Shown: positions 192 through 64,000 of the stretch, in pieces | How positions within the stretch are numbered: position 1 is the stretch's first letter | Layout of the letters: every line of letters starts with the position of its first letter | From: Tubulanus polymorphus | Lineage: Eukaryota; Animalia; Nemertea | Assembly: GCF_964204645.1 (NCBI RefSeq) | Contig: NC_134035.1 | Span: forward strand, 868,001-932,000 | DNA: 64,000 nucleotides | Direction of reading: 5' to 3' | Program-made: the position numbers and the translations under genes | Notes under the pieces: model-generated | What the model was told of the DNA's origin: nothing | Database searches by the model: none | What the model saw: the letters and a program-made list of their open reading frames with translations, nothing else

Positions 192-801
192 TTTTAAGGT
201 GCACACTACTCTGCCATCTATTAGCTAACGCTGTAAACAGAGCTATTCAGTGCCCGCTGATGATGATGATGATGATGATTCTAATAAGCCGGTTGTGAGT
301 GTAGATATCATCGACGTAGATGTTTTATTCGTAGGTGTCACGTCTGTGATAGATACCCCGTTATTATCGATGACGACGCACAATACCCGCGCGCGCGCCC
401 GGATAATGACGACTAAATCGGCTAAGCCGGTTCCCGCCGATCATTTTCCGCTGTTTTGTTCATTGTACTGTAATTGTGTCGGTCACAATGGTTCGTTCGT
501 TCGTAAGCCGAGGTCTGACCGTATTCATAGTCGACGACGACGACGGTCGTTGTGTGAATGCGGGTATTGTGAACTCGCGCAGTACTGAGTGCAACTCTTT
601 TATTATATGAATTCTAGTATGACATGTATATAGTTCAGGGAATATGGAAATTTTTCATGACCCCGAGACTCGATTTGTCCTGATGGATGCGAAAGTGAAA
701 TATGGTGCGGAACGTAAACTTGACTGCACAAATATAAACCTATATCAGTTCGATCTGGAGCTAGCTTTCCCTACTGTTCTTCCCGCATTACGATATGAGT
801 C

Positions 802-1050
802 CACGGTGGCCACTTAGCTGGAAATATGTTAACCACGGAAGAGTCAGGGAATCTTGTAAAATAGCTGAAAATCAGGGAAAGTCAGGAAAATTTGTTGAGA
901 TTGTTAGATTTAAATCAAACAGTTCTGTCTATGTCTTACATATTTGACTGTGTTAATTGATTGGATACTTAGCAGATCAAGTCAGGAAAAACAACGTCCA
1001 CGTCAGGGAATAGTCAGGGAAAAAGGGAGTCAAATAAAAGTTATCATCTT
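802..1050 (+). mobile_element. hAT-like MITE family A1, degraded copy
   Basis: Starts CACGGTGGCCACTT; carries the diagnostic TTGTTGAGATTG, TATTTGACTGTGTTAATTGATTGG and GTCAGGGAATAGTCAGGG motifs and the AGTCAAATAAAAGT end. Confidence 0.8.
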
Positions 1051-1659
1051 TTTTAAGAGTTAAATTTAATAAATCAATTTAATTTTCTACTTGACAACAC
1101 CAGTAAACTGTCCTCGGTCTCAATTAAGACAATCTTCATGGACTGAAACGCGATTGGACATTGTTCGACGTAATAAACATCCGCGTATATGCGTTAGCCG
1201 ATCGAAAAAGCCATAAAAATAAGAGCTTCCTGAAATTTTTCCATTCGCTCGTGACAATAGGGACAAAAGCCATTTAATTCCAGGCGTGATTAGTGAATGC
1301 GCTGTTGTCGATAGAGAGCTTCAGTGCTTCTAAACTATAAATAATCTCCAACAATAGCTACGAACAATTGTCCCGTACTGAAAGTATTGTCATAAATATA
1401 TATATATCTATGCATGTGTGTGTTATGTGTTGTATACATACAACAACAACAACGGTTTCTCTGGTTTTATCGTAAATCTCTCGTATCCCTAACGACGACC
1501 GACGTTCGACCACCGGTTATTGTTGTCCCACGGAAACAGTGTTTCTGACGTTTTTCCGCATAAAAACATCGGTAAGTTTTTCTTTTTTCATTCTGACTTG
1601 TGAAATGATTTTCGATCGGATTTGTTGTTTTTTGATATTCATATCTACACTTTTTTGCT

Positions 1660-1831
1660 AGCTCTACTTCTTGTTCAGGGTCAAATTTTTTCAGTGCCGT
1701 TTTTCATTTTGTCAGCAGAGGAAATTGGTTTATTTCAATGCCGGAGTTCGCCTAACATTGCCTTTTCGGATATCAAAGTACCCTTTTGGTATGTGACAAG
1801 TTCTTAGAAATTGGCTTCTGGGTCCGTCCAT
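1660..1831 (+). mobile_element. Degraded MITE (family G, CAGGGGCGGATCC-type end)
   Basis: Co-linear similarity to 46556-46735 (CCCTTTTGRTATGTGACAAGTT...AATTGGCYTCTG); right end GGGTCCGTCCATG. Confidence 0.6.
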
Positions 1832-3905: not shown

Positions 3906-4715
3906 GGTTCAACATGCTGTACAGAATGATATGTTGATGCTATCTCGTTTGAATCCTTGTCAAGGGGACCATGTCAGGATATTGAGTCAAGCAATGTGAC
4001 TAGGTTTGAATCTCTGAACGACATATTTATCTTAGTCTTTTCGCCAACAGTACTTTGTCCAAGTTTCTCTAGTGTAAAACTGTGCCACTTAAAAAAAGTT
4101 AATTTCTCCAGTTTTTTTCTGCGTTTTGAACGTTAATATTTCCAGCTTGACTTACGTGAACCGCAGCGAAATTGTTCTATCGATCCGCTTGCCGCAGTCG
4201 GTTGCGAATTCTCGCGGCGTCGTCGGTACACGACACACGCGGCGACGAAATGTCAGAAATCTCATTATTTTCGTTCGATAATAACGTCTTCTATTGTTAA
4301 AGAGCAATTATAGTTTAAATCAACCGCGGAGCAGAGTTCAACGCTCGTCGTGAATAGAAAATCGTCGTCTTCGTCGTAGTAGTACGTCTGCTCGTACCCG
4401 CAGATGTCGTAATACGATTTACCACTGTCGTCGTCGGTGACGGTTTTTTATTCCGGGTGACGTTAGTCATTATTCTCCTGCGCCGTGAAATTTAATTGGT
4501 TTTTCGAAATATCGTTGAGCGAAATTTTGTTTTCAGGTCGCAACGCGATTTGTTCGTCGTAAACTGTACTGGGGTTAATTCACTTGTTAAGTTAACAGAA
4601 AGATGTTGCTCTACCCTGATTTTTGAAGCTTTGTCAGTACTGGATGGCTCATTGATTCAATGAACTGAGTTTAGAAGTTTGAAATGTTTTCGCCTGACAC
4701 CAGTTTGCACACCAG

Positions 4716-4869
4716 GGCTGGGTTTCATAGATGTGCAAGCAAAATAGTCCCTGGGAACATTTCGAAATATGTCAGTTATAGCCATGGTTTCTCATTGTTA
4801 CAAGTGTTAACCAGATTTAGGAGTTATCCCTAGGGATAACTTCGATACTCTAGTCTATGAAACCGGGCC
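4716..4869 (-). mobile_element. PIF/Harbinger-type MITE family C1, complete
   Basis: TIRs GGCTGGGTTTCATAGA / TCTATGAAACCGGGCC with a CAG target duplication on both sides; reverse-oriented homologue at 18484-18640. Confidence 0.9.
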
Positions 4870-4900
4870 CAGAAACTTCAGAACACTTCCGTATCTTAGG

Positions 4901-5106
4901 CAGGGTGGCCACTTAACCTGGAAATCAGGGAAACATCAAAGAATTGAGTTGAGATTGTTAGATCGTGCATAAAATCAAACAATTTCAGTGTATATTTGAC
5001 TGTGTGTTAACCGATTGGATTCTTAGCAGATCAAGTCAGGGAAAACAGCGTCTATCTCAGAGAATAGTCAGGGAAAAAGTGAGTCAAATAAAAGTGGCGC
5101 CACCTG
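4901..5106 (+). mobile_element. hAT-like MITE family A1
   Basis: CAGGGTGGCCACTT ... AAAGTGGCGCCACCTG; flanks TTAGG/TTAGA. Confidence 0.9.
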
Positions 5107-6029
5107 TTAGATTATTCACATAATTCATGTTAATGCAACGCCACATCAAACATCGTTATTGTTACCTTCAACAGTAAGTTTCTTAATTTGGCTTTGAAAA
5201 ATTCATTTTCAATTGATTTCGGATTTGTTTCATACGATTTTAATCCTCGTCATAAATTTTACCGGGGGACAACAATCAGTCTTTATGTGACAGTAATCTC
5301 TGATAATATCAGACGTGTTTATAACAGGTAGAACAAACGTCGAACGACCGGCGCGGAGGAGAATTAACGCGAATTACCCGCGTATTATCAGCGATCGGAT
5401 TGACTGAGTAATCCACTCGAGGTCACCTCCCGGTTCGAGCCTCGTCGTCGTCGTCGAAGCCAAAATCCGAAATATTGTCGTTGTAATAAGCGTCGGCGAT
5501 AAACCGCGCTGACAAGTGATCGCCGTTTGAAAATTAATCAGTTATTTCGAAAAGAGCTTTCGAGGGGGTTTTCTTTTCGCGTGATGAATTATGATTGGGT
5601 AAGCCGACCGCGCCGCCGATTTCGACTGTGTGGTTTTATAAAAACTGTTTGAGATGAACCGGCGCGCGCGCGCGAACCCGCGCGTCCATTAATCTTCGTC
5701 GTCACGGCGATGACGGCGTGCGGTTTGAAAGGAGTTTCGGCAGCGTCGTAATCTCCGTCCAAAAACAAGTGAAACTTCACTCACTTTTCATCGTCGGCGT
5801 CGATGGCGATTTATTAATGAGCGTCGCTTCTTTTCATCGCGTCTTAAAACCATGAATCATTATTAGCATGTAAATCTGTTTCTAAAAAGAAGATTTCGAT
5901 TTTTTTAGAATTGTAAAACTTTGTTGTGCTGCCTAATCAGTCAAAGTTTTAGTGGCGCCTGAGTTTACTTTTGTTGCTTCAGATTATGGCGTCCAACGTA
6001 ACACGGGTTTGAACAGGATTGCGTTTTGA

Positions 6030-6300: not shown

Positions 6301-6400
6301 AAGTACATATCCCTGTCCCGAGGCCCCATCGTTCATTGCTGAGATTGAACATGGTCACATCATGAAACTGCCATATTCCAAACCCCTATGATACTAGACC

Positions 6401-6880
6401 CTTTCCTGCTGATAGCAACGTTTCTCCTTTCTTGATGGCGTCGTGAGCCTCTAAAACATTCTTCCCTCCCTTTCCTACTGATAGCAACATTTCTCCTTTC
6501 TTGATGGCGTTGTGAGCCTCTAAAACATTCTTCCCTCCCTTTTCTGCTGATAGCAACATTTCTCCTTTCTTGATGGCGTCGTGAGCCTCTAAAACATTCT
6601 TCCATCCCTTTCCTGCTGCTAGCAACATTTCTCCTTTCTTGATGGCGTCGTGAGCCTCTAAAACATTCTTCCATCCCTTTCCTGCTGATAGCAACATTTC
6701 TCCTTTCTTGATGGCGTCGTGAGCCTCTAAAACATTCTTCCCTCCCTTTCCTGCTGATAGCAACGTTTCTCCTTTCTTGATGGCGTCGTGAGCCTCTAAA
6801 ACATTCTTCCCTCCCTTTTCTACTGATAGCAACGTTTCTCCTTTCTTGATGGCGTCGTGAGCCTCTAAAACATTCTTCCA
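6401..6880. repeat. Minisatellite, 69-bp unit, ~7 copies
   Basis: Unit CTTTCCTGCTGATAGCAACRTTTCTCCTTTCTTGATGGCGTCGTGAGCCTCTAAAACATTCTTCCCTCC; accounts for the 23-aa periodic ORFs 6360-6884 and 6386-6832. Confidence 0.97.
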
Positions 6881-7622
6881 TCACAGAAGTATCGCGATAA
6901 TGCAGCGTTCTTCCTATGACTGTTTTGAACTCGATGCCATCGTGAAAGTCTTGTCACGTTTTCTTGCCTTTTCAGCCATTCTGAAGCTGAAGTTCGAATC
7001 CCTGCTAAATATGAATTATGGCAGCTATTAACTGCACAAACCATATAAAAAGCCTTTCAATGATAATTAATGAACGATATTTATTATTTTCTATCTGAGA
7101 CAATACTACTATACTGGAATCTCTCTCTCTTTCTCGCTCGCAAAGTGTGTAGAGCTATTTATTACTGGATGACAATGATTTAGATGGTGATTTAACCGAG
7201 CTAACTTTGGTCAACAATGATGATTTATCATGAAATAATTCATGCATTGTTAGGCCACACGATGTGCGCGCATCTTTTTTGAGAAATAGTTTCTTTTCAA
7301 ATATAACTCGCAGCTTTCAATACATTCACTATATTGACTTATATCCGGCTTGGGCCTCATTTGGGGAAAGTAATGGCTATTTCCTCTGAACAATCAGTGA
7401 CAGGGGAATTTCTGCTGAGGATCCAAATATATCTGAAAATTACGAAAGATACGAAATCTAAGATTTCAATACTCAGTCATGATGTCTCCCTCTTTGTTTT
7501 GAGTTCATTATAATGTTAGCATAATTCTTTATTATAGATAGCTTAACAGCGAAAAAACAGTGAAAAAAGTGCCCCAGAACCTTATTTGTCTTGACTGCTT
7601 CAATTTCTAGATCGGGACATTA

Positions 7623-7907
7623 GCTGTGATCACATGGGTGTTTTTGGCCGGGAACAACTGTTCACATGGGTGCCAAATGGGCCCGTGCCTGTTTGGCCCA
7701 GGTCTGAGCCAAATTTTAGCACTGGTCAAATTATTGCATGTGAATTGCAGCTGGTTCCGGAAGTGACTCACTTAGCTTTGTTTAAACATTGTTTAGTATG
7801 GAGTGAGTGGATTACATGTGAACATGTGCTCTTAGGCACAGGCCAAATATTTGACACGTGGCCTGATCTGTGCCAATTTGCCCAAATCATCTCCGTGTGA
7901 TAGTGGC
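7623..7907 (+). mobile_element. PIF/Harbinger-type MITE family D, near complete
   Basis: GCTGTGATCACA ... TGTGATAGTGGC; core CTGGTTCCGGAAGTGACTCACTT...CATTGTTTAGTA; TTA left flank. Confidence 0.85.
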
Positions 7908-8535
7908 TTTTGTATATAAATTGTACTCAAGTCACGAAATGAAACAGTGAAATTAAAGTCCTTGTCCTGAAATAATGTCAGGTTATGATAGAATACGGCT
8001 TTATTATATGAAGAATGGCCTCATCAACGAGCAATTCATAACACATCTATTATAGACTCTCTTATTCTACATGATGCATGCGGTCTTTATTACGTGGTCA
8101 TTTGTTTCCGCGCTGATCAACTTAAAACCGATAAATTTCAACGCGCGCGCGAAGAGAGAAAGTTGTTCTTATTAATTTCCAGTGACGAGATATTTTTCAC
8201 GTCACTATTCTAATTGGTGTAATAACAGTGAAAAAGACTGCCCGGGATTTCTGTTTGTGCTTACCCCATGGGCGTCACCAGAGTGGGGTAAAGGGAGGTG
8301 CAAACATTCAAGCAATTCTCAACCCCTTTAAAAAATCCTTGTGAAGCCCCTGACCCTGTACTGCTTTTTATTAGGACGTCCCAATAAAGGCACCTATTAC
8401 TATTGATATAAGACAAATCACAAATGACAGGATAACGTCGTATTGAGACTCCGTAGTGTCCTGAAACTTGTTCAGGTTTCATGCAACGTTAGTCGTCTGT
8501 TTTGGATTGAATTCAAGCAATATCATCACAATCAA

Positions 8536-8650
8536 TATGGCTGACTGGTAGCCATATTGGATGGCTAAATTGTAGCCATATTGGATGGCTGAATGGTAGC
8601 CATATTGTATGGCTGGATGTTAGCCATATTGTATGGCTGAATGGTAGCTG
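8536..8650. repeat. 24-bp quasi-palindromic tandem repeat (~4.5 copies)
   Basis: TAGCCATATTGKATGGCTGAATGG units; a further copy at about 8768-8795 and related CAATATGGCTG motifs at about 39570-39610. Confidence 0.85.
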
Positions 8651-9763
8651 TATTTGATTCTCGAAGTACATTTCATGTTCTTGCTGGAAGTTTTTGACGT
8701 CGGGTCTTCATTTTTACAAATGAAAGTGACACAATACCTGTCGCTTTTAGTCATCTCGGTGTTCAAGATGGCTGACTTGTAGCCATATTGGATTCTTGAA
8801 CTACATTGTTCGAATGCCCTGCAGAATGCTGAATCTTCATTCAATAGTCAATTCAATTCAATAGTCCATTATTTAGTATCATCTAAACGATACTAAAATA
8901 ATGGCTAATGTCGACTGATGCCATCGTAAAGGGTCAAGTCTGTCATTGACTCGTGACCCTGTTTTTGGAATTCTGAGTCTCTGCTGGTGGTATTCATATC
9001 GTACCAAACATAATAGCTACATACCACAACGAGCGAATACAATACCATAACGTGGGTGTGTCGACTTTAGCGCGTATACCGCGCCATCGTCGTACTATTG
9101 GCGCGTTTGATGAAAGAGAAAAAAAAACGACGTTTCGACTCGCGTTGAATATCGAAAAAAAGTTGTCATTTATATTTTATATAACACAATCGACTGACGA
9201 TACATATAGTAAACTAATATTGTCGCTGCGTCGTAGACAAAAGCGACGTAAACGTCGAACGAGAAGACTATAGACAAATCGCCCGGTTTTGAAGTAAACT
9301 CATTATTCTCGTCGGGGCATTGTAACTTCATAATAATCGAGTCGACCTATATTAGTGTAGTATATTGTTATGCCAACCGCGCGTGGTAATTCGGTTACTA
9401 TTGTTGTTTAGGAGACACAATGTGACATCACGATCCCCGTCCTACGACAACGACGACGACGACAACACTATAGAGAGGATAATCATTTTTGAACAGTTTC
9501 GAACGGTTTTCTCGACGTTTTTTTGTTGCGTATCCCGGATAAACTGTATATACTTTAGTAGAATCTGTAACCGGGAAATTCTAGGTGAGGATCGTGATTT
9601 TAGTGATATTTACGTTTCAGTCGTAACAATAGCGGGGGTAAGTGTTTAATGAAGTGTGATAAAGTGGAGACTCCGCCTTAATCGCTACCGGTCAATTTCA
9701 TTTTGCCTTCTTGGATTTTTTTTCAAATGTTAATGAGCCCAACACTATCAGATAAGATGGTGC

Positions 9764-10212: not shown

Positions 10213-10999
10213 AGTTGTTATCGCTGTAATTGATTTATTCGTCAAAAACTGACCATAAATGTTGGATTTTTGTTTGTTGGCTTCATTCAATTGATGTTGA
10301 CCTTTCTGAAAGTCAAGCATCTGCAAAAACTGTTTGATAGAATGCTGAATGGAAAACACCGTCCGGTTAGGTGAAAAGGTTTTATGCTGTAATAGTACAA
10401 AGTTTGAATCCCCAGAGGTTTAACGACTACCCAATGTCGGGATAGTCATATAAACCCGTATACACGTATTGTAAGAAAAAGAGTTTCTTTTCTTCGTGTT
10501 CAATGTTTGTTTTCGATTTTTAGCCGTCGAAGACGCATTCCACAAAAACCGGAATAATTGAATCTACGCGTTTCTCGTCCTTTATATCGGCACGTTGAAT
10601 GCGCCTATTGTCAGTTATAAGGCTGAAATAACCACATTTCTGGCACCGCGATATATCTACATGTGTACCGGGGGTATATATAGAATAATTTAGTATTAGG
10701 GTTTTGTTTATTTGGCATTATCTGAAGAGAACAAGAGTGAGTGAGAGAAAGAGAGAGGTTTCTTTCTTCGTTTCGGAATGATTCTTCTTTCTATTCACGC
10801 GATATACGGCATTCTTGCGCTTTGTGATACACATTTTTTGACCCGCTATATTTCTCTATGACTCGCCAGTTTTGAATGTAGAAATTCCGTCATTATTTGG
10901 TTATTCGAACGAGGAAGTAACGCGCTGTGACGTTGATTGGGTTTTGGACAACAACAAAAAAACATTTAAAATCAGTGGAAGCTTATTTTGATTTTACAA

Positions 11000-11460
11000 G
11001 TTAAGACCAGTCTCAAGCCTAACTAAGGGTCACATCAAACGTGTTCTATCTCTTAAGATGGATCGGATCTGAACGGATCTTATGTGACCAGAGTGTCTAT
11101 TTAAGGCCGATCTAAAGGTCGTAGCCAATGAACGGCGATGTGCACATCACATGACCTACGTGTTCAGTTCAACATGATCGTGGGACTCAGTTGACCTGAG
11201 TGTAGCCGAGATCAGTTTTGGTCGAGTTGGCTCGACTCGACCTCGCGATACGACCTGAGCGTTCTTAGGAACAAATTGCAGACGATCAGATTGGATTGGA
11301 TCTTAGTGTTTGGCTTTAAGCTAGTTTTAGTTCTATACTCAATCTAATGACAAGGCCAGTATAGGCTCATTTTTGGTTATATTACCAATTTAACTACAAG
11401 ACTAATCTAAACTTAATTTTGTTCTATGGCGAATCCATCAATTTAGACCTGAATCTAGAG
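11000..11460. mobile_element. Degraded family C2 MITE apparently interrupted by a ~290-bp unrelated insertion (~11026-11318)
   Basis: TTAAGACCAGTCT and GTTCTAT...AATCTAA motifs, contiguous at 44414-44460, are split here by unrelated sequence. Confidence 0.45.
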
Positions 11461-12177
11461 CCAAAGTAACCAGTGGAAGCCTTTATAGTTTTATACCGTT
11501 ACACATCTCATGAACGTCTTAAGATTTAAAACCATTGCTGGGCAACTGGACTCATCTTCCCAGTCCGTCAGGTCATGGACTCTAAAACTACACAACTATA
11601 TCTGTACTTCGATTTCCGATTTCCAAATCAATCCCCGGGATGTTAGATAAGAAATGACATTCCTTCGGGTATTTGAGAAGGAATTCTCTCGTCCTTTCTG
11701 TTGATGATGAAAAAAAAAAACAGTAACGAGTTACGTAGAAGCGAGTGTACACTCGGTACACTCGCTGCGTGTGTCGTGTGTCACTTGTTTTACGACAGAA
11801 ACACACCACCCATTGTTGATTCAAATATTGTTACCGGAACAAAACAGGAATCCTGGGTAAACAGCTTGTCATCGGATTTATCAGTGCCGCCGTTCGCAAT
11901 ATTGCGTTTAGTGTTTTTCCTGCGTATACAGCACGTCGCGTAGAGATTCCTCTCGCTGCCCTAACCGGCCTTACCCCGTTTATAAAAATAGCAAGCTATA
12001 ACTCGTTTCTGAGATGACATCGTATGAAAAAAAAAGACGCTCGCAATCTGTGTTCGTGAGCAGTTTGTAAGTGTCTCGGCCTGTTGTTCAGATATCAACG
12101 ATTGATAGTTATTACACAGCTTCTTACACAGGCGTTCACAATGATCCATTAAAAATCCCTGAAACAAATTGTAAAAG

Positions 12178-12599
12178 CAGGCTGGCCACTTGTGTGGTAA
12201 TCGGGAACAATTTCTTTTATTTAAAAAAGTCAGGGAATAATCAGGAAATTTAATACAAAAAAGCCAAAAACTTAGGGGATAGGCAAATTTGTTGAGATTG
12301 CTAGATCACGCATAAGATCAAACAGTGTCCGTCTATGTTTTACGCATTTGATTGTGTTCATCGATTGGATTCGAAGCAGATCAAGTTTGGGAAAACAATG
12401 TCAGGGAATAGTCAGGGGCCAGTTCCATAGTCGAGACTTACGACCAAAAGTGGTCTTAAATCTTAAAACTGATCTGAAGTTATTAGATTGGCTATATATT
12501 GGAACAAAGTTTGTCTTAGACCGGTCTTAAGTCTAAGCCCTGTCTATGGAACCGGACCCAGGAGAATAGCTAGTCAAATAATAAAAGTGGCGCCCCCTG
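12178..12599 (+). mobile_element. hAT-like MITE family A1 carrying a nested Harbinger MITE
   Basis: CAGGCTGGCCACTT ... AAAAGTGGCGCCCCCTG; family sequence resumes after 12561. Confidence 0.88.
12416..12558 (+). mobile_element. PIF/Harbinger-type MITE family C2, complete, nested in A1
   Basis: 15-bp TIRs GGGCCAGTTCCATAG / CTATGGAACCGGACC; CAG duplication at 12413-12415 and 12559-12561. Confidence 0.9.
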
Positions 12600-13890: not shown

Positions 13891-13908
13891 GACGAATGAG
13901 GGATTTAA

Positions 13909-32495: not shown

Positions 32496-32516
32496 CCCAT
32501 AACTGTTTATTATCAG

Positions 32517-32554
32517 CACACACACGCACACACACACACACACACATACACACA
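32517..32554. repeat. (CA)n microsatellite
   Basis: Direct reading. Confidence 0.95.
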
Positions 32555-43724: not shown

Positions 43725-44218
43725 TTCCTTCTCTCTCTCCCCATCATCCCTCCTTCCTCTCTCTCCCCATCATCCCTCCCTCCCCATCATCCTCCCTCCC
43801 CATCATCCCTCCATCCTCTCCCCATCATCCCTCCATCCTCTCTCCCCATCATCCCTCCTTCCTCTCTCTCCCCATCATCCCTCCCTCCCCATCATCCTCC
43901 CTCCCCATCATCCCTCCTTCCTCTCCCCATCATCCCTCCATCCTCTCTCCCCATCACCCTCCTTCCTCCCCATCATCCCTCCTTCCTCTCTCCCCATCAT
44001 CCCTCCTTCCTCTCTCCCCATCATCCCTCCTTCCTCTCTCCCCATCATCCCTCCTTCCTCTCCCCATCATCCCTCCTTCCTCTCTCCCCATCATCCCTCC
44101 TTCCTCTCCATCATCCCTCCTTCCTCCCTCTCCCCATCACCCTCCCTCCCCATCATCCCTCCTTCCTCTCTCCCCATCATCCTCCTTCCTCTCCCCATCA
44201 TCCCTCCTTCCTCTCTCA
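43725..44218. repeat. Pyrimidine-rich minisatellite (CCCCATCATCCCTCCTTCCTCTCT variants)
   Basis: Direct reading; source of the Pro/His/Ser-rich ORF 43686-44237. Confidence 0.95.
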
Positions 44219-45636: not shown

Positions 45637-45921
45637 GCCGCGATCGCGCTGAGACGATTTGGCCAGGGCCGAATCAACACGGATCAGCGGGCCCTAGTCA
45701 AATTTAGCTCATGACTAGTTAGAGAGCGCGTTCACATGAAAACCACTTACTCGATACTAATCCATGCATGAACAAAGCAAAATAATGGTCTGGAACCAGT
45801 TACAATTCACACGCAATAATTTGACCCATGATAAAACTTGGCTCAGGCCTGGTCTGATATTTCTGGTCGGGCCAAACAGGAACGGGCCCATTTAGCAAAA
45901 ATGCTTGTACGATCACACGGC
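45637..45921 (-). mobile_element. Family D MITE, reverse
   Basis: GCCGCGATCGCG start; GGAACCAGTTACAATTCAC..ATAATTTGACC core. Confidence 0.82.
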
Positions 45922-46555
45922 CGTACTCTCTATACCGCCATAACTAAATCATGATGGGCTGTTTATGATAGGTCGACTGTTGGCTGAAACTGCTTGCTTA
46001 ATAAGTAAACGTTCTTTAAGTTTCTAATACCGGTAATCTGATAAACTCTGGTAAACTCAAAGTTTTCGTCTTTTTCTGTTCTACTCAATAACCGTTAGCG
46101 AGAACTTCTAAAGTACATAGCTCCGCTGCGAAGGATTGTTCAATGGTTTGTATCGACGAATGACACGATTGCCTGGACACACAAATTTGTCTTTCACTAG
46201 CGCCGACACGCAGTTTTTCATTGAAAAAACGCCGGACTCTGATTAGAGTAAAATACCCGCAATACGTTTTACGGTTACGGAATTAATTACTCAATTCATT
46301 GTAGCGTATTCCGCGACGACGAGCGCGGGTTTCGCTGGAACGGTTCCGAATCGGTGTCAAATTGGTTCAATTACGAACGAACGAATTAATTGTGAAAAAG
46401 TTCTTCCCGGACTAGTGTGCCGTTAAAACAGGAAAAACCACGATCGGTTTTCTTTTTTAGCTTCTTTGAACTGAAATTTAAGATTGAAATTTTTGAAATT
46501 TCATCTAATTTGGGCAAAACTCATGACAATTTCAGGTTACAGTTTGCATCACGTA

Positions 46556-49659: not shown

Positions 49660-50312
49660 TAAATCTAAGCCTTGACTGTGCCACTGACCCCTGGAGGTCT
49701 AAAATCTAAGCCTTGACTGTGCCACTGACCCCTGGAGGTCTTAAATCTAAGCCTTGACTGTGCCACTGACCCCTGGAGGTCTTAAATCTAAGCCTTGACT
49801 GTGCCACTGACCCCTGGAGGTCTTAAATCTAAGCCTTGACTGTGCCACTGACCCCTGGAGGTCTAAAATCTAAGCCTTGACTGTGCCACTGACCCCTGGA
49901 GGTCTTAAATCTAAGCCTTGACTGTGCCACTGACCCCTGGAGGTCTTAAATCTAAGCCTTGACTGTGCCACTGACCCCTGGAGGTCTTAAATCTAAGCCT
50001 TGACTGTGCCACTGACCCCTGGAGGTCTTAAATCTAAGCCTTGACTGTGCCACTGACCCCTGGAGGTCTTAAATCTAAGCCTTGACTGTGCCACTGACCC
50101 CTGGAGGTCTTAAATCTAAGCCTTGACTGTGCCACTGACCCCTGGAGGTCTTAAATCTAAGCCTTGACTGTGCCACTGACCCCTGGAGGTCTTAAATCTA
50201 AGCCTTGACTGTGCCACTGACCCCTGGAGGTCTTAAATCTAAGCCTTGACTGTGCCACTGACCCCTGGAGGTCTTAAATCTAAGCCTTGACTGTGCCACT
50301 GACCCCTGGAGG
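49660..50312. repeat. Near-perfect minisatellite, 41-bp unit x16
   Basis: TAAATCTAAGCCTTGACTGTGCCACTGACCCCTGGAGGTCT; only a T/A variant in two units; no spacers. Confidence 0.98.
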
Positions 50313-50833
50313 TTATAGAATGAAAATGGGTTCAGACATCTGCCCCCTCCCCCCGAATGGTTCAACATTGAGCGATTCTAGCGACCAAAAGACACGAAAT
50401 CTAGATGGCGCTCGGGAATGACATATCCGCTCGCGTATTTGCGACGAGAGAATATTTCGCAAAAATCCGTACGTATTCATTCGCGGTTGAGCGGGTAATG
50501 CAACTGATTTATTGTGAGTAATAGTGCCTTTATTGGTCCAGTGTGATGAAGTCATGTGTAAAATTGCGCGCGGATTTGTTGCAGACTGTTGTGCCAAACA
50601 AAGGTCATCATACGTGGTCTAAGTAGTCGGTGTGTTTGTATGGATTGTCATCGCTGACAGGGACCTTATTAACAAAATCTTTTGCTCAGCCATCTCTCTT
50701 CAGAAGAAACCGATTTGATGGCCACAGAATTCTAGAAATTCATCTCTCTCCGACTTGTCATTCTGGGAACCCGACTTGAATGGCATTTGAAAATCTTAGA
50801 AATAATGTTTCTCTGGTTCAATTTTCTCATATT

Positions 50834-51869: not shown

Positions 51870-52062
51870 TGGGTCGACCGGTTACACAACGCGGGTCGAC
51901 CGGTTACACAACGCGGTTCGACCGGTTACACAACGTGGGTTGACCGGTTACACAACGTGGGTCGACCGGTTACACAACACGGGTCGACCGGTTACACAAC
52001 ATGGGTCGACCGGTTATATAATGCAGGTCGACCAGTTGCAAAACATCGAGTTGACTGGTTGT
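51870..52062. repeat. Minisatellite, 22-bp unit, ~8 copies, decaying rightward
   Basis: GGGTCGACCGGTTACACAACRY units. Confidence 0.95.
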
Positions 52063-52064
52063 AG

Positions 52065-52200: not shown

Positions 52201-54059
52201 TAGCCAATCAGATATTCCATTTCATTTGAGCCTGTTCAGTATTCGATGTGAACTTTTTTGAATGTTAGAAATTAAGTTTAGAAATCGCGCTTTTCCTCCT
52301 CGTGCGTTTCGACGGATTCTATTTCCGTTTCGGGCGCGCTTTGTTACTGAGGTGTTTTGTTCTGTCCTCGATTGTGGACAGTAAGTTGGCGACGACGACG
52401 AGGACGACTTCGTCATTGTTGACCAATCATCCATCATAATACTTGTCGACCGATATTTGAGTAAAGATGGAGCCGACTATCGTCTATCGCGCGTAATCGG
52501 TCAACGTTCATTCGATAATCGTGTTTGTTTTATGATCACGTCTCCTCTCTCTCTCACGTGTCCATTTAGACTGACAAGTTCGTCACATGAATTATTCTAT
52601 CTCGATACTGTATATGAACTCAGTTCGCTCGGTTGTCACTTTGTAAATTGTAGCCAAAATGATGGATCCATCTCTTGATCTCTTTTCTACACAAACTATC
52701 GCGCTCTCCTCCACTGCGAAAACACCGTCTGCCCACGAGATTCGCGAGTGCCGATTTAGTTCTACCATATGAGTTATATTTCTACTCCAGTATTGTTGAA
52801 GGATATTATATTTTGCACAAAGTTTGGGCTGCTGCTGATGCAACTGAATCTCGGGCGCGTTTGCAGAGTAAAATACATTTTTATATTGTAGAAAATCCCA
52901 CAACAACTAACAACGAAAAAATGATATTTAGTCCGAAAATGTTTCCTTGTTAGTATGTGAGCTTTAGATATTGTAATGATAATCTTCAGGAATACTGAGT
53001 TACAACAGAAATTATGGAATATATAAAATCCTGAACAGACGATACTGATCAAGTATTCAAAAGCGATACAAACTAAGGGGAAATTAACATAGAACATAGT
53101 TACAAGCTAAACAGATTAAAGAGGAGCAAACTAGGGGGGGGGGGTGGGGTAATACAATAGTGAATATAGATATGGATTTAAATCAAATGATAGATATCAA
53201 AGTGACGATTCGAACTAAAAACAAAAATTGAATTTCAATTCATCGAATGAAACTTCGTTTGATGATAACCAGGAGTCGATAGATTATAGTCGATCAATCA
53301 AACGACTTTAGTCAAAGAAAAGATCATTGATTTTGTATAAAAAAAAGAAACATTTCTCAACAACTTCAATAAATCTGCAGCCCGCGAACCACTCCACCCC
53401 ATTCAGACTGGTTCACGCATTATTACGTCGCATATTATGACAACTACAATTATTAAATAGAATTGTATATATCGGTGGTGGTGTTGGTACGAGCTGTATG
53501 AATAATCGTTTGTCGTCGTTCTGCGAGAGACTGGACAAGTACCGGAATCGGGTAAGTATTATGAATCTGTCAACCGGGGCCCCATCGACTCGGCGTCGTA
53601 GCCGCGAGCGATCGTGGTCAATTGTTGGCCGGCGTCCATTCTTGCGCGCTCGTTCAAAATGATAGATAGCGTACAATGAGACATTGTTGAGTGTCGAACG
53701 TGTAGATTTTCGGCGTTTCGACGACGAATTGACGAACACTTGAACGACGACGCCGCCGTCAACTCATTCCGCGTCGCGCTATTACTATATGTACATAATC
53801 GTGAGGCCCCTCGAGTCTCGGCGCGCCGTGTTTGGCGTGTGTACATTTCATTGTGCGTTCGTTGTTGTAAAAGCCATCTCGCGCCATCGCTCGGTACCGG
53901 TACCCGTCGCCTAGTATTAGAACGATGACAAGTGCTTATTGTCTGAGATCGAATACATTTCAGTTTCGTTAACTGTTCTTCATTATCACAGTCAGTCTAA
54001 TGTTAGTCAGGTTTTGTGCAAAAGTTCCCCCCGAAATTGTGGCTTCCCCGTTAAGACTG

Positions 54060-55239: not shown

Positions 55240-55528
55240 CGCATGCAGGTGATTTAACCCAAGTCAAATTTGGCCCATGACTAATTAGAGAGTGCAGTAA
55301 ACCTCTCACTAAATACTAAACAATGCTTAATCAAAGCAAAGTGAATCACTTCCAGAACCAGCTGCAATTCACATACAATTCTTTGACCCATACTAGAATT
55401 TGGCTCTGGCCTGGTCTGACGTTTTTGGTCAGTCTAAACAGAAAAGATACGGACCCATCTGTGGGTCTGTGGTGCGAGCCGCGTGAATGAGTGGCGCCGG
55501 CCCAATTTAGTCCATGCGTGATTTTGGC
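55240..55528 (-). mobile_element. Family D MITE, reverse
   Basis: TACTAAACAATGCTTAA..AGTGAATCACTTCCAGAACCAGCTGCAATTCACA core. Confidence 0.82.
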
Positions 55529-56053
55529 TATCAACCGATTTGAAACCCTGGTATAGGAAGCTCTTCCATCAGCACAATGCGCTGTCTGTTCAACCATTGG
55601 ATACACCACATGGTGTAAATATTGTTGTGTAAGAATTACCCGTAGTAAACACAGGTAAGAGAGAAGAGTTTATAGAAGACAACTGCGTTGTGTATGTGTG
55701 TGTACTGGGGCATTAGTCAGAAGTTGTTTACTACACTTCACCTGCCACATCAAAAGCCGTTCCCATTCATCTGCCCTGAATTCATTGTCGTCGAAGATAA
55801 ATGAAGTTCCTGTTCTGAGGGGCCCAGAGAGTTGAGAGGCGAATATAAAAATGAAAGGTAGTTTAAAGTTCTTTGTTTATTCTAGACGTTTATGGTCTTG
55901 AGATAATAGAAGTTAGATCTGTAAACATTCTTAGGATTTCTCTGGGATTTTCGAAGTGAAGGGTCCTAGAACTGCAAGCCATCATCTCTCGCTGATTATG
56001 CAATCTTGTGTGGATAAAAGTACAACATTCCTGAACATAGATGACTGCACAAA

Positions 56054-56305
56054 GCCCGTGATTGCCGGGAGATGATTTGGCCCGATCTCTAATTTGGCCC
56101 GGATTCTGCCCGAATCAGGCCACACAGACCACTCCATTGATACTAAACAATGCTTAAACAAAGTTAAGGGAGTCATTTCCGGAACCAGTTGCAATTCACA
56201 AACGCAATCATTCGACCCTTACTAAAATTTGGCTAGGGCCTGGTATGGGCATATTTGGTTGTTCTTGACCAAATTTGGACCGGGCCAGAATGTGCTATGG
56301 CATAT
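56054..56305 (-). mobile_element. Family D MITE, reverse
   Basis: GATACTAAACAATGCTTAAACAAAG..GAGTCATTTCCGGAACCAGTTGCAATTCACA core. Confidence 0.82.
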
Positions 56306-58452
56306 TGTATGGACATATTTTGACCCAAGTTACCATCCGTCAACGGATCAGGTCAAGGTATTCAGTATCAAACTCTGCGCTCGTACCTGTCTCTCTCCTC
56401 ATTTTTCGAAGGTATTCAGTACCAGTTTACAGTTTACAGTTTTGCTCAACGATAAATACAATTGAACAGCACAAAATGTATAAATTCAGTTCATATTATA
56501 CAAATACTAATAATTAATATGATAACAATAATTTCAAGCGAAGGCTGGTAAGCATTTGTTTAAAAAATATAGATAACTTGATCAAAGTTTTTCTGTTTGA
56601 ATTAAGTCGCAGCTGTAGGGTAAGATCAGTTGGGTGTCGCCAATACTTACTCCCCGCTCGTACTGTCTCTCTGTCCTCGACTGGGCTGCGATGTTGAATG
56701 AGACTGTTTTGTTTTAGATCAGTCGTGTAATCGCTCGTAGTAACACTGGTGTGTATAGTTGTTGTAACAATGTTTTCATGCACAATGACGACAACAACGA
56801 CAATGCGATTAACCGACGAATCCAAACTCGATTAAGTCGACGAATGTTCGTAGTTTTTATGCGTCTGTTCCGTCCAAAAATTGAATTAACGACCGACAAC
56901 GTATCGTTGGCTCGTTAATCGAATTCCGCGATGGCCGCCGTTTTCGACGCTTTGTCCGTTGTTGTGTTCGGAGAGGAGTTTTTATTTATTTCTCGTTTTA
57001 GAAATTCGATCCTCGTTCAACGTTGTTGTAATTTTTAGATGATCCAAGAATGTTTGCAGGTCGAAATTTTAAAGTGCCTTTTTATTTTTTTTCTCTGTAT
57101 CAAAATTTTCCTGTAGTTACCACCCCAAATACACAATAGCTATTTTTCCTAAATATATAACCTATGTTTCTTGACTAAATGCCTCTCAGAGATGCTCTAA
57201 AAGGATAGTGAAATTTCAGAATTTTGCTGATACGCCTTTCCGCCCTAAATTAAGAATATACGCCCTTTTTATTGGTCGACATGGTCACAACATGCCCCTG
57301 GATCACCCCTGTTTTGTGAGACGAAGTCAGGTGTATACTTCAAGCAGTCCCCACGCCAGCAGGCCTAAAGTTTACCCCAAGAAATATCTGAAATATCATC
57401 CAATAGAATTGCCCCCCACCAAGAATGAAATAATAGGTATGTCGTATTAAATGTTCAGATCGTCGGTCTTTATAAAATTGTGAATGTGCGAAGTGGTGCG
57501 AGTTCCAGGCTGCAAGTGATACTTTCATTACAAATACGAATCCATTATTCGACTCTCATTTCAGCTCGGCACGTAGGAGTGAATAACAGAACGCTCGTAA
57601 CGAAAGAAATCTCACTTTCCCACTCTCTTGTTAAGTCGTAGTCGACAGCGACGATGGAGAGGGGAAAAAAAAGAAAAACTTTTCAATTAAAATTCGAGCG
57701 CAGCTGAAAGCGTATTATCACTCCTTTACGGTAAACAAAGGCAATTAAAACGCGTCGTGGAAATCTGGCGGGAGATAAAGCTCCCCCATTGAAAACGGTA
57801 ACTATACAGCTCATTAAAACGCTACAATAATAATGACTTGTTCGACGATGTTTAAAACGCGCGCGGGTGCGAATCGGGAGAAAAATTGAAAAATCTGCGC
57901 GGAATCATAAAACGTGCGAATGGTGCGATTTCGCGGCAGATGCGTTCGCGGCGTAATTGCCTAAATCGACTGATGTTCCGTGTCAAATTTTACGAAGCGA
58001 ACCCCGGTCGACTCGAACGACGACGATAGAATGCTTTTACTGTTAATTGTACGGAAGAATAACGGAATAACGGCCGCCGTGGTAACGTTTCCGAAACTAC
58101 GAATTTAATGAGCGTCGGGTTTTTAAATAATCGTTCGTTCACGATCGAGTCGCGGCGATATTGAAAACGAGCGTCGCTGCGACGACGACGTTTTAGGTTG
58201 AATTGTTCATTAAGCGACGAGGACGAACAAAACGAGGTGTCGTTTACTGCGACGGTGGCAAAGTTTTTACGACGATCGCGATCGTTTGTCAAGAGTACGT
58301 ACTTTTACTACTCTACGTGAGAGAGAATGAAATCATCGCCTGCGCTCTGAATTAAATAATTGCCGCGATGTAATTATCTCTGATTTCGAACTGAACGCAC
58401 CGTAGAAAGATTCGTCCATAAAAAACTACTGATTTTGTTTTGTTAAGTTAAA

Positions 58453-58708
58453 GCCACGACGATCGTATGAGCATTTTTGTGGCCCATGCCAAAGAACATC
58501 GGACCAGGTCTGAGCCAAATTTCAGCTTGTGTCTGATTATTGCGCTTGAATTGCAACTGGTTCCAGAATTGATTAACTTCGCTTTGTTTAAGCATTGTTT
58601 AGTATCGACTGAGTGGTTCACGTGTGAATGCCTTCTCTAATTAGACACGGACCAAATTTTACTCAGGCCTGATCCGTGCCAATTTGGCCCGTCTCTGTGT
58701 GTTCACCT
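58453..58708 (+). mobile_element. Family D MITE
   Basis: GAATTGCAACTGGTTCC..CTTTGTTTAAGCATTGTTTAGTATCG core. Confidence 0.82.
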
Positions 58709-59963: not shown

Positions 59964-62314
59964 GTGACTGATTTTGCTTACAATACTCTATCATTCTCTG
60001 AATATGTGAGTTTCAATTCCGTAAATTTAATACCTCATATCCGCAAGTCTACAATAAGTGCGCACACTTTCGAACAAATAACAGAACTTGTCAATAACTG
60101 ATTTATGTGTAGCTTATGTTTTCCGAAACAGATGCAACAAGCTATATTCCAACAATGAGTGCCAGTTGGCGGCAGGAAAGGCGCGATTGATTTATGAGCA
60201 TTGTTTGGTCATTATGACGTCAGAATTAGAAAAAAATTCAATCTCCAACATTGCGGAACAACATACTTACCTGTACCTACACCCACAATCATAAAATAGA
60301 AGAAAATACTTCTAAGTTGTTTGACATCTCTGTATTTTGATGCGTCTTCTATTACTGACATTGAACGATTAGTTTCTACTCTTAATATACGAAAGACTCC
60401 AACTTATTCATCCAATGTAAAATAACAATTAGTTTATCTTTGTCGTCTTGAGTAAGTTTTGATCTCAAAATAGGGATTGACCTTGTTATTTATTTGATTG
60501 ATAGTTTTCATTTGAATGTTGTTTTGATTTAGCGTCCCTTACAATCGCACCACACCTGCCGAGAGCAAAACAGGGTTTGATTTCGAAATTTGGAAATCGA
60601 AGTATAGATGTATAGTTGTGTGATCGGCGGTCAAATTAACAGAATTTTTTGTTGAAATCGAAGTTTGCAATTGGTAGTATAGGTTCAGGTTCATTCAAAC
60701 AATCTTCCAATCAGCGTGACCCGGCAAGCGACTGATCGCGGTCGTTTTAGATGGAGGGCTGATATTGATATTTTGGTCGTGAATATTATAGCTCTCAAAT
60801 TAGATAACTACTATTACACTACTTAATTCTCCTTACAATGATAGAAATGTCGGCCTTGACTGACTGGCGTTAATTTCATCGCCTGGCTACTGAAATAGCC
60901 GACTCTTGATTGTCTTCTTGTTCTTCTTCCTTCAAATCTCGGTCACCGAATTTAAATACATCTTCAGATCATTAACGAACATTAACAACAGCAAGAGGAA
61001 AGTATTGCAAACACTCTGCGCTCGCTCGTTGTTGCTGCACCGTGTATTGTTTAGATAATATTACACCCGGTAACTTCTATGCCTCTCGCTGGCTCGCAGC
61101 GGCAATCTTTTAATTGTAAGTTCACCTAATTAATCTAAAATTACAAGGCGTATTATGATGGGAACATTTTATTCGCTGCTTTCGTTGTTGTTTTCGGTTA
61201 CGGAAAACGCACTGAACCATTTAATTGCCATTAAGCAGAAACGCCGTCGAGGAGGACCGCGTAAAAATTTTCTTGCCTGATAAAAATTCGAGGAATGGTT
61301 TTTAACCATGATACCACCACTGCTAACTTCAATTGCTTGATGTGAAGCTGGTACTTAACAGGGGCAGAGATAGAAAATTTGGAAGTCCCGGGTCCAGAAG
61401 AAAAGGCTTTTTTCAGTTCAAGCAGCTATGTTAAAGGCCACTAACAGGGTCCCACCCTCGGTATGAGATATTCCGCGAGGATGATTGTCAAATTTGCAGG
61501 TTTTATACAATCATTGTCTTGACAAATAGGGCAATTCTTGCATTAAACCTCGTCGAAAATGATGAAATCGCGTTAGGTATATGTTGTCCCTTTTAAAAGA
61601 TTTAGCGTGAAAAATTCCGTTTATGGCATGAAAAAGGTGGAAAATGGCAATGTGAAAAAATATGAAAATTTCAGAAACTTTTGTCTAATCGCTGTAAGAG
61701 TGTATATTGTCTGTATTTGAATTTAGAAGGTCGAACTGAGGACGATCTTCTCTCAAATTCCATTATAACCGACTAAAAATGGCTTCGTCGAGATATCCGG
61801 TATTTTCCGGCCGTATCCAATTTATACCCGGCCGTTGTGTGACTGCTTTCATCGCCGGAGGCGACGGCAACAACGACGTCATCCGTCCGTATGTTAAAAA
61901 CATATCTATTTAAAACGATCAAAAAGTTTCGCGGGTGAAATTCAATGAAGCGATCATAAATTGCGGTGGTCGGATTTTCGTTGTCGCTCGAGAAACAAAA
62001 CCGTAATCGTCTTTGCCATCGCCGTCGACGACGCGGAGACAAAGCGCGCTGGTTGACAATACGCGCGCGCGAATGCCACAAGTTGTCGGCGTTAATGCGA
62101 TGAAATGTCCCGCGTCGTGTGAAGATAAACGTCTTACGGTGAGAACGAGAGACAGAGAGCTGAACGTTACCGGCGCTTATACTTGTAGCGCTTGATCGGT
62201 AAGCTGTTGTCTGATGATGCTACTACACCGGCATCAAAGCTTATTACGTACATATCAACCTCTCTGTTCTACACTTGTCACTTGAATTTGACTCAAAAAG
62301 TAATTATAACGTTA

Positions 62315-62622
62315 CAGGGTGGCGCCACTTACCTGGAAATCAGGGAAAAGTCAGGGAATTTTCTTTTCTTGGAAAAAAGTCAGGTTAGTCATGGAATTTG
62401 GTGAAATAGCTAAATATCAGGAAAACTTTGGGGAAATTTGTTGAGATTGTTAGGTCGCGCTTAGTTAAATAATTTCTGTCTATGTCTTACTTATTTGACT
62501 GTGTTAATTGATATTTGACTGTGTTAATTGATATTTGACTGTGTTAATTGATTCGATTCTTAGCAGATCAATTCAGGGAAAACAACGTGCATGTCAGGGA
62601 ATAGTCGGAGGGAAAAGGCAAA
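62315..62622 (+). mobile_element. hAT-like MITE family A1, right end truncated, with internal 20-bp triplication
   Basis: CAGGGTGGCGCCACTTACCTGGAAATCAGGG; TATTTGACTGTGTTAATTGA x3 at 62492-62551. Confidence 0.9.
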
Positions 62623-63876
62623 AATGTTTTGAGATTTTAAGATTTTGTTCATATCCTCTGTTGATATCCCTTCGGGAGAGGTTCCTGGTGTGACATAGCA
62701 ACCCCTTATAGTTTGTAAACTCTGAAGATGGAAGGAAGGAAAGAAACGAGAACGGTTGTGTAAAGTGATATTGTGCGTTTTTGCCCGATAATTTCAAACC
62801 TTAGCTGAATAGCCACATCAAGTGACACGAGTTTCCCTAACTTAAGGTTCGTCTTCATCAAAAACAGTCATAATAGATTTTGATGAAATATGTAGTTGTT
62901 TGAGTCATCTTTTCTTGCAATAAACACTATTGGTGTATTTGCCTCTACTCACCACATGTCATTGGCTTCGAAATAATATATACGGCCAAGTGTAAGTGGA
63001 ATGATAAAGTTTTATACGCCGCTGTCAAGAATGATTGTTTTTAAATGGAATTCTCTCTCTCTATCTCTAGCTCGCTCTACTTCATAAACGTTAATGCATA
63101 ATGCATAAAATGAGAAAATAATCGCTTGTGTTATTACTAGTATATTAAATAACGTTATTTTTTCAATGCGGGACTCCTCCCCCGACGAGACGAACGAAGA
63201 AACTCATTTCTTTTCGCATTCCGTGAACTCATTTCCATACTACGACGACGACGACTGAACGACCGAGTCCTCGAAATCGGCCATCGTTTATGCGACGTAC
63301 CATTTTCGCGGCAGCCTTTTAATTCTCTGTCTCACTCTTCTCTCCGTCTGTCTCTCTGTCGGGCGTGTGACAACAAGGATCCAATCGCAAACAAATCGGA
63401 CGTATTTCGTCGCATATAAATATATGTATGAAAAGTTTGTTATCGGCGCGTTGTTGTTGTTCGTCGTCGAACGTTCTTGAGGAAACTTGTTCTAGGGCTC
63501 TCGGCGGCGTATTTCAGATCGGTCCGCGTTTATGTAAATATCTGGCTGCTGAATATTTGCCTCAAATGTGTCACTGAATGACGCAGTCGATGACATTGTC
63601 ATCCGCCACCGAGAATTCGGCATATATATATATATATATATATTCATTTGCATCTCCGACTACAAAAGATATTTGAAATCAGGAGCCGCTGAAAAGTGGT
63701 TCTTTCTCTATTGATTGTGTTATTTACAAGTCAAGTTCTGCCTTGTAACTTGTCAGCCGGAGTTTGGAATTTCACCGGGAACTGAAGCCAAGTTCCAAGG
63801 TTATGACGAGAAAAACTAAGTCAAAGAGACTTGAATCTTAAGAGGGAAAAATGAACGACTTCTAAAAATCGTGATG

Positions 63877-64000
63877 AGGCTAAAAAAAATCGATACCTTG
63901 TTTCTCCGCTCTGATGAGCTTAAAACTTGACCCGGCCGGCCGCCTATCTACCCTATACATTACTTTTTTTAAATCGTGATCAATTTTACCATAACAGACC
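63877..64000 (+). mobile_element. Family H element running off the window end
   Basis: Shares GCCGCCTATCTACCCTATACATTACTT..GATCAA..ATAACAGAC with 25754-25798. Confidence 0.6.

Follow-up and report, generated by a model that had tools for sequence, protein, structure and literature searches.

Results

A kilobase-scale mosaic of CpG-rich and CpG-poor DNA

We analyzed a 64,000-nucleotide stretch of the genome of the nemertean Tubulanus polymorphus (C11:868001-932000 of the 267.8-Mb assembly; hereafter "the window", in which positions are counted from its first letter), where CpG-dense and CpG-depleted blocks of DNA alternate from one end to the other. The window as a whole has a G+C content (GC) of 41.2% and an observed/expected CpG ratio (CpG o/e) of 1.25. 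A two-state Poisson hidden Markov model (HMM) fitted to CpG counts in 25-bp bins improved the log-likelihood by 447 over a one-state model and divided the window into two kinds of block: 49 are CpG-rich, with a mean length of 476 bp, a GC of 45.5% and a CpG o/e of 1.95, and 50 are CpG-poor, with a mean length of 814 bp, a GC of 38.8% and a CpG o/e of 0.68. Block sizes range from 0.2 to 1.5 kb, and the rich blocks account for 36% of the region.

This segmentation bears out the description given in a first-pass annotation of the window, which had reported about 50 switches between CpG-rich and CpG-depleted blocks. Its hand counts were exact (11 CpG in 4201-4260 and 0 in 4561-4680; 9 in 30121-30180 and 0 in 30661-30780), 30 of the 33 rich-block starts that it listed lie within 150 bp of an HMM boundary and all 33 within 250 bp, and the short (GAC/GTC)n runs it had pointed out are present in the rich blocks. 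The boundaries, which it had called sharp, are step-like: after base-level refinement of all 98, CpG density rises on average from about 1.2 to about 5 per 50 bp within one 50-bp bin, a mean profile that cannot be distinguished from that of simulated step data. In addition, contigs of an independent public run are colinear with 27601-30659, 30865-32511 and 32561-33100 and cross several boundaries, so the mosaic is not an artefact of assembly. The kilobase-scale alternation in CpG density is real.

CpG-poor blocks carry short, old dispersed repeats

To place the two block types among repeated and unique DNA, the window was compared with itself and with 200 kb from two other chromosomes (264 kb in all). 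Within the window alone, matches covered 28.6% of the bases in poor blocks and 0.8% of those in rich blocks; with the 200-kb sample added, repeats were recognised on 32-33% of poor bases versus 1% of rich bases, an enrichment of about 30-fold, and 39 of the 50 poor blocks contained at least one. Whole-genome searches revealed dispersed repeats in the formerly repeat-free stretches 8151-9025, 10651-11100, 11276-11725 and 29276-29900, and also in 31351-32575 and 52751-53375, two blocks that the first-pass annotation had singled out. The first four of these bring the total to at least 43 of 50 poor blocks. Among the poor stretches which that annotation had considered free of any recognisable element, 28200-28500 and 31360-31900 are indeed single copy, whereas 52900-53200 is filled by the repeat at 52888-53206. 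With lengths of 150-500 bp and identities of 65-90%, the repeats are short and old; their candidate copies number from about 20 to over 1000 and are distributed across all large contigs, and no Pfam protein domain was found in the repeat open frames tested.

Individual repeats are listed in Table 1. The element at 4710-4875, which resembles a miniature inverted-repeat transposable element (MITE), has 580-1600 candidate copies in the genome at 84-90% identity, and its sharply defined ends fall at the same positions in 40 scored copies. The repeat at 914-1060 has a translated open frame that in turn matches 12276-12527 and 62532-62690, and translated frames of the commonest repeat, 7595-7919, match 22051-22227, 45803-45943, 55284-55433, 55985-56218 and 58452-58637. 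Read depth over 29414-29629 is about ten times that of its flanks. The query that held the two adjoining repeats at 11034-11470 drew, as a whole, more than 1000 first-look candidates from the genome; the first of the two, 11034-11321, overlaps a small and marginal "rich" call at 11101-11275.

Several tandem and exon-like features were also observed. The unit at 11315-11470 is a solitary member of a satellite family, which forms arrays elsewhere with copies offset by about 94 bp (C8:2181872-2183160, C8:848492-848957, C8:14365608-14366167 and C10:12792615-12793330). The 41-bp array at 49660-50313 looks like a young minisatellite, and the array at 6399-6879 consists of 7 copies of a 69-bp unit (96% matches), which give open frames of 164 and 197 amino acids on the minus strand. 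Within a single-copy poor block, 28420-28530 lies between an acceptor-like ttttag and a donor-like AAG/GTGAGT, which may mark a small exon or reflect chance.

CpG-poor DNA differs in kind from CpG-rich DNA

On the lattice proposed in the first-pass annotation, both states would be the same kind of DNA, at positions independent of repeats. The 30-fold enrichment of repeats in poor blocks contradicts this expectation, as does dinucleotide composition. In poor blocks the o/e values of CG, TG and CA are 0.68, 1.20 and 1.11, and in rich blocks they are 1.95, 0.85 and 0.79, with CT/AG at 0.65. Simulated erosion of the rich blocks from CpG to TpG/CpA yielded values of CC/GG, AG/CT and TG/CA near 0.8, 0.77 and 1.45, respectively. 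Poor DNA not recognised as repeat, like the single-copy poor blocks, has CC/GG of 0.94-1.06, AG/CT of 0.97-1.08 and TG/CA of 1.13-1.22, which is the profile of the recognised repeats. Because the profile of poor DNA is that of the repeats and unlike that of eroded rich DNA, the two block types are different kinds of DNA, and the poor blocks are not CpG-eroded rich DNA. Most simply, the unrecognised poor DNA would be older repeat-derived material.

The arithmetic of GC content (45.5 minus 7.2 gives about 38.3, and 38.8 was observed) was considered as a sign of eroded rich DNA and rejected, since the other dinucleotides do not match. We used two 100-kb regions on other chromosomes (contigs C1 and C5) as controls; in the high-CpG windows of both, CpG excess is again coupled with a deficit of CT/AG and CC/GG.

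CpG-rich blocks are unique, non-coding and mutually unrelated

Within the stretch that was searched against the whole genome, no rich block has a second genomic copy. Comparison of rich blocks with one another by self-blastn, by blastp of open frames of at least 45 amino acids, and by nhmmer for each block detected no similarity beyond compositional noise. Twenty open frames (10 from rich blocks and 10 mostly from poor blocks) gave no Pfam match above threshold, and no structured RNA was found in the window with Rfam at gathering thresholds. Open frames in the rich blocks are as long as Markov-shuffled sequence gives (z 1.5-2.0), the period-3 signal is mostly about 1 with no sustained codon periodicity, and the translations of two of the longest frames have the appearance of Arg/Ser-rich noise. 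CGACGACG-type 8-mers occur in 29 of the 49 rich blocks, and distances between CpGs peak at 3, 6, 9 and 12 bp; the only motifs common to the rich blocks are microsatellite-like runs that are short and contain CpG, of the types (CGA/GAC)n and (AACG)n. Taken together, these results identify the rich blocks as unique, non-coding and mutually unrelated DNA.

These comparisons bear directly on the idea that the rich blocks are the homologous units of a diverged tandem array, or the exons of a large gene. Regular spacing would suit either version, rich-block open frames are slightly longer than poor-block ones, and the constant AT skew reported below hints at one long transcription unit. The lack of rich-rich matches in blastn, nhmmer and blastp of translations tells against a tandem array; frame lengths at Markov expectation, unsustained codon periodicity and the lack of Pfam matches tell against coding exons. 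We give the idea as a whole almost no credence.

Two further observations concern the rich blocks and their strand composition. A CpG-bearing tandem repeat of 22 bp in 7.9 copies (51871-52044) is the sole sizeable repeat in any rich block. The AT skew is about -0.06 window-wide (T exceeding A on the plus strand) and is negative in 33 of 49 rich and 41 of 50 poor blocks; it changes sign in the control regions. A constant skew of this kind may mark one long plus-strand transcription unit or intron, or the direction of replication.

Table 1. Blocks, repeats and other stretches of the window, in order of position
Feature	Start	End	Strand	Details
Whole mosaic	1	64000	.	23.3 kb rich and 40.7 kb poor; HMM, edge profile, band power, autocorrelation
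Typical CpG-rich block	4151	4575	.	Single copy, non-coding, (CGT/GAC)n runs
MITE-like element	4710	4875	.	165 bp; terminal inverted repeats; within poor block 4576-5325
Second dispersed repeat of poor block 4576-5325	4915	5113	.	Translated open frame matches 914-1060
Commonest repeat in window and sample	7595	7919	.	Depth 19; no Pfam domain
Dispersed repeat in poor block 8151-9025	8371	8523	.	About 20 copies, 72-83% identity
Two adjoining repeats	11034	11470	.	Dispersed family 11034-11321; tandem-array unit 11315-11470
Polypyrimidine (CCCTCT-type) low-complexity array in poor block	14163	14440	.	Similar array at 43733-44217
Most regular stretch	17251	35925	.	About 14 rich-to-rich periods in succession, 0.75-1.6 kb, mean about 1.25 kb
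CpG-poor, single copy in genome	28176	28750	.	Whole-genome search; repeat-like dinucleotide profile
Old dispersed repeat in poor block 29276-29900	29414	29629	.	66-81% identity over most matches
Typical CpG-rich block	29901	30550	.	Whole-genome search: no second copy
CpG-poor, single copy in genome	30551	31000	.	Whole-genome search; dinucleotide profile
Single-copy part of poor block 31351-32575	31351	31904	.	Whole-genome search
Dispersed repeat in poor block 31351-32575	31905	32124	.	About 22 copies, 68-85% identity
CpG-poor, single copy in genome	34876	35450	.	Whole-genome search; dinucleotide profile
Longest CpG-rich block	47051	48550	.	1.5 kb; without intra-window or sample repeat
Tandem array, 41 bp x 16	49660	50313	.	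99% matches, zero CpG; makes up most of a poor block
Dispersed repeat	52888	53206	.	At least 203 candidate copies, 71-82% identity

CpG loss in repeat copies and the methylation machinery

We counted substitutions in 14 short non-coding repeat families, with copies from the window and the 200-kb sample scored against the majority states of each family; a Pfam scan of one family member revealed no domain. Transitions affected the C of CpG at 21.5% of copy-sites versus 7.3% for other C/G, a difference of about threefold, and TG and CA were the main products of CpG loss. Gain of CpG from TpG (3.3%) was not in excess of the background rate of T>C (3.6%), and the ratio of loss to gain was 6.5. CpG o/e is about 0.5-1.0 in the family consensus sequences and 0.55-0.95 in the copies, and copy identity did not correlate with CpG o/e. 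These counts make methylation-type erosion within poor DNA likely.

A search of the genome for the methylation machinery located DNMT1 at C7:2911642-2923862, where RFD and methylase exons lie at one locus; it is the sole C5-methyltransferase locus found. Three MBD matches are present, on C11, C5 and C6, and neither DNMT3 nor DNMT2 was detected in an exon-by-exon search of limited sensitivity. The CpG-specific loss in repeats, together with the DNMT1 and MBD genes, makes germline methylation of repeat-derived DNA plausible, and we infer a state in which poor blocks would be methylated in the germ line and rich blocks would not. Erosion by germline 5-methylcytosine (5mC), as advanced in the first-pass annotation, is thus supported in part for the repeats, where CpG transitions are in excess, and falls as an account of how poor blocks arose, since they are not eroded rich DNA.

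Composition alone might also produce the mosaic, if the repeats arrived CpG-poor and the blocks had no difference in germline methylation. Consensus sequences with CpG o/e of about 0.5-1.0 lie far under the 1.95 of unique DNA, poor and rich blocks differ in several dinucleotides besides CpG, and the exon-wise search detected DNMT1 and not DNMT3, all of which would be in keeping with this explanation. However, the copies have lost CpG specifically, which is the classic signature of 5mC deamination, and DNMT1 with its RFD, as well as MBD genes, have been retained. We judge an effect of composition only to be distinctly improbable.

Spacing of the blocks is locally ordered

The power of the window's CpG signal in the 800-2000 bp band is 0.295, compared with 0.13±0.02 under an HMM null with geometric durations, 0.188±0.025 with shifted-exponential durations, and 0.206±0.026 when the observed block lengths were redrawn at random. 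The autocorrelation of CpG has peaks at about 1.2, 2.4 and 3.8 kb and troughs at about 0.6, 1.8 and 3.0 kb, the first peak falling within the 1-1.4 kb range named in the first-pass annotation. That annotation had also proposed a geometric null for the block lengths, and they depart from it: they are gamma-like and under-dispersed rather than exponential, with fitted shapes of 2.7 (rich) and 3.6 (poor) and modes near 0.5 kb. The coefficient of variation (CV) of rich-block length is 0.58 versus 0.84±0.11 expected, and 13 of the 49 rich blocks are 450-600 bp long, where exponential lengths would give 5.

The most regular part of the window is a run of 12-14 periods at 17-35 kb, in which the spacing has a CV of 0.13-0.165 (permutation P 0.002-0.007). 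In overlapping 16-kb sub-windows, band power was raised in 7 of 7 (0.20-0.36) and the peak period was 1066-1230 bp in 6 of 7. Band power in the control regions, which have fewer repeats than the window, was 0.03-0.23, with overall z of 2.9 and -0.6 versus 7.5 in the window. In the control C5:8000001-8100000, which has 6.5% recognised repeats, CpG counts are near Poisson at a CpG o/e of about 1.25; the bimodal mosaic is therefore regional and not genome-wide. We found no window-wide phase coherence (Rayleigh test on block centres, periods of 0.7-2.6 kb; maximum R 0.35, P=0.37 versus shuffled orders), no preferred unit of length between 250 and 900 bp (P about 0.5), and no correlation between the lengths of successive blocks. 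The order of the blocks thus exceeds chance, but only locally. Because the window was picked from more than 1200 windows, the P-value for local regularity (about 0.003) is uncompelling on its own.

These tests bear most directly on the mechanism favored in the first-pass annotation, a long-lived, positionally fixed methylation or chromatin lattice that repeats every 6-7 nucleosomes or so and would have stripped alternate blocks of otherwise similar DNA of their CpG. A lattice would account for a characteristic period of about 1.2 kb with several autocorrelation peaks, for the very regular run at 17-35 kb, for band power raised in every sub-window, and for the three poor blocks and part of a fourth that are without repeats. 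It would not account for the lack of phase coherence or for block lengths that are unquantised; nor does it sit with the enrichment of repeats in poor blocks, with poor DNA that is not eroded rich DNA, or with a pattern that is weak or absent in the two control regions. Given the choice from so many windows, the local regularity does little to rescue it, and we consider a fixed lattice very improbable.

Fewer haplotype differences in CpG-rich blocks

A second haplotype, represented by contigs of run X1, could be compared over 5.5 kb (27601-33100), where it is about 1% divergent. Among the single-nucleotide polymorphisms (SNPs) that were listed (15 are unlisted), 11 fall in rich blocks versus 22-29 in poor blocks, and insertions or deletions (indels) number 1 versus 9, the two block types being of similar total length (combined P about 0.014). 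Among the 11 SNPs in rich blocks, 7 exchange CpG with TpG or CpA, and non-CpG diversity is several-fold lower in rich than in poor blocks.

The deficit of differences in rich blocks brings in constraint as an explanation, in which rich blocks would be functional units of about 0.5 kb, similar to non-methylated islands or regulatory elements and bound by CpG readers, and transposons and neutral DNA would persist only between them. The spacing and the narrow range of sizes would then reflect the packing of functional units, and CpG would be kept by selection or biased fixation. Such a model would fit the narrow rich-block sizes (gamma shape 2.7, with the surplus at 450-600 bp), the almost complete exclusion of repeats from rich blocks, the nesting of repeats in wider poor DNA whose edges they do not set, and the fewer SNPs and indels in rich blocks; CpG/TpG polymorphism that is common in rich blocks, yet accompanied by an o/e of 1.95, fits removal or non-fixation of the alleles that lose CpG. 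The polymorphism sample is tiny, however (5.5 kb, one other haplotype, contigs only), and low-complexity and paralogous DNA in poor blocks inflates the apparent differences. Furthermore, constraint on 36% of a 64-kb non-coding region would be unusual, and the rich blocks have no common motif beyond the short CpG-bearing microsatellite-like runs. We regard this explanation as unlikely, albeit worth keeping in view.

A further possibility is that biased fixation, either GC-biased gene conversion or selection for the binding of CpG readers, drives unmethylated single-copy DNA of certain chromosomal domains to a CpG o/e of about 2 and holds it there. This would happen in islands some 0.5 kb (about 3 nucleosomes) long, with reduced diversity and resistance to transposon insertion, and methylated repeat-derived DNA would decay between them. 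Taken as a whole, this scenario appears to us rather unlikely. If it were true, two self-reinforcing states would give rise to the sharp edges and the quasi-regular 1.2-kb array, that is, to an epigenetic and mutational landscape that is bistable below the scale of a gene. To our knowledge, such a landscape has not yet been described for animals.

Discussion

We consider it probable that the mosaic is not a lattice, and that it consists of CpG-rich single-copy DNA broken up at intervals of about 1.2 kb by CpG-poor segments that are short, old and derived from transposons. The base would be gene-poor DNA, single copy and non-coding, in which CpG is unusually abundant (o/e about 2), and the interruptions would be old, short, non-autonomous repeats of 150-500 bp, similar to MITEs or short interspersed nuclear elements (SINEs) and 65-90% identical to tens to more than 1000 copies, accompanied by DNA of the same composition that is too old to be recognised as repeat. 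Low CpG would be a property of the inserted DNA, which may have been CpG-poor at the start, as the consensus o/e of about 0.5-1.0 suggests, and whose CpGs would since have decayed to TpG/CpA at about three times the rate of change at other C/G sites; this faster loss is what germline methylation of repeat-derived DNA, with unique DNA left unmethylated, would be expected to produce. The sharp edges would be the junctions of two kinds of DNA. The spacing would be quasi-regular at 1.2 kb because both types of segment have a characteristic, under-dispersed size, and would represent the local order of an alternating process rather than a fixed lattice.

Several observations weigh against this explanation. 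Even with whole-genome searches, repeats can be recognised on no more than 30-50% of poor bases; single-copy DNA makes up three poor blocks entirely and a fourth in part. The repeats lie nested in poor blocks, where a further 100-250 bp or so of poor DNA flanks them on either side, and the coincidence of repeat ends with block edges was not above chance, which weakens the simplest form of the explanation, in which one block is one insertion. No target-site duplications were found at the edges of poor blocks, and paired junctions were no more alike than unpaired ones, in a comparison that has low power because the blocks are old and composite. Rich-block lengths are under-dispersed, whereas random insertion predicts exponential lengths of unique segments, and the observed order exceeds even that of a renewal process using the actual block lengths; something besides random insertion therefore shapes the spacing. 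Lack of methylation would not be enough to raise unique DNA to a CpG o/e of about 2, and the exon-wise search, within its limited sensitivity, did not detect DNMT3. In addition, with CpG/TpG and CpG/CpA exchanges making up most rich-block SNPs, CpGs in rich blocks have no obvious protection against mutation. Three features thus fall outside the explanation: the lower polymorphism of rich blocks, the under-dispersed sizes and an o/e of about 2 for CpG.

The arrangement recalls the short-period interspersion of repetitive and single-copy DNA, the "Xenopus pattern", which Davidson and Britten reportedly deduced from reassociation kinetics in the 1970s. In both, repeats of a few hundred bp alternate with roughly 1-kb single-copy stretches over long distances, and the two components of that pattern are found here: a dispersed repeat component is present, and the other component is single copy, with about 1% of rich bases matching elsewhere. 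The classic account is silent on CpG, whereas the components of the window differ about threefold in CpG o/e, and the single-copy segments here are shorter (about 0.5 kb) and more uniform than random insertion predicts.

Low- and high-CpG-o/e compartments also lie side by side under mosaic ("fractional") methylation, which Bird and colleagues, and work on Ciona and sea urchins, are said to have described as gene-sized domains of several kb or more that follow transcription units. The blocks of the window differ in being 0.2-1.5 kb long, in having no recognisable genes and in tracking repeats. Vertebrate CpG islands have a CpG o/e of about 0.6-1 and cover 1-2% of the genome. Like these and other non-methylated islands, the rich blocks are sharp-edged, CpG-dense blocks of 0.3-1.5 kb in a CpG-poorer surround; unlike them, they have an o/e of about 2 at a GC of about 45.5%, occupy 36% of the region and have no detectable association with genes. 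In marine algae, DNMT5 methylates linkers genome-wide with a period of one nucleosome (about 170-200 bp), an example of periodic methylation that is able to leave a footprint in sequence. The pattern reported here differs in scale (1.2 kb) and is regional, tied to repeats and without phase coherence.

Methylation targeted to transposons has been documented in cnidarians and other invertebrates, where the youngest elements are the most methylated (Ying et al. 2022, PMC8857917), and CpG o/e has been used to survey the methylation of repeats (PMC8857923). The repeats of the window are similar in bearing a footprint of CpG depletion relative to the DNA around them, in a genome with DNMT1 and MBD genes. 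They differ in that the footprint is read from sequence alone and that the repeats are old (65-90%) and show no relation between identity and CpG. Excess of CpG with depletion of CpT/ApG has been reported for large invertebrate DNA viruses, and the same has been noted for invertebrate hosts (PMC4219779). The rich blocks share this signature, with CpG o/e of 1.95 and CT/AG of 0.65, but here it occurs in single-copy, non-coding host DNA at sub-kb scale and with no viral genes, and the coupling of the two values is partly arithmetic.

The feature is thus a short-period interspersion of repeats combined with a repeat-associated footprint of CpG decay, both of which are known, and both of which are made vivid by the CpG-rich unique DNA that surrounds them. 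On this explanation, CpG density alone marks repeat-derived DNA in this genome at a resolution of about 50 bp, even where an insertion is too old for similarity searches to pick up. The lower polymorphism of the rich blocks, the under-dispersed block sizes and a CpG o/e near 2 in unique non-coding DNA bear on how unmethylated CpG-dense DNA is kept up outside vertebrates.

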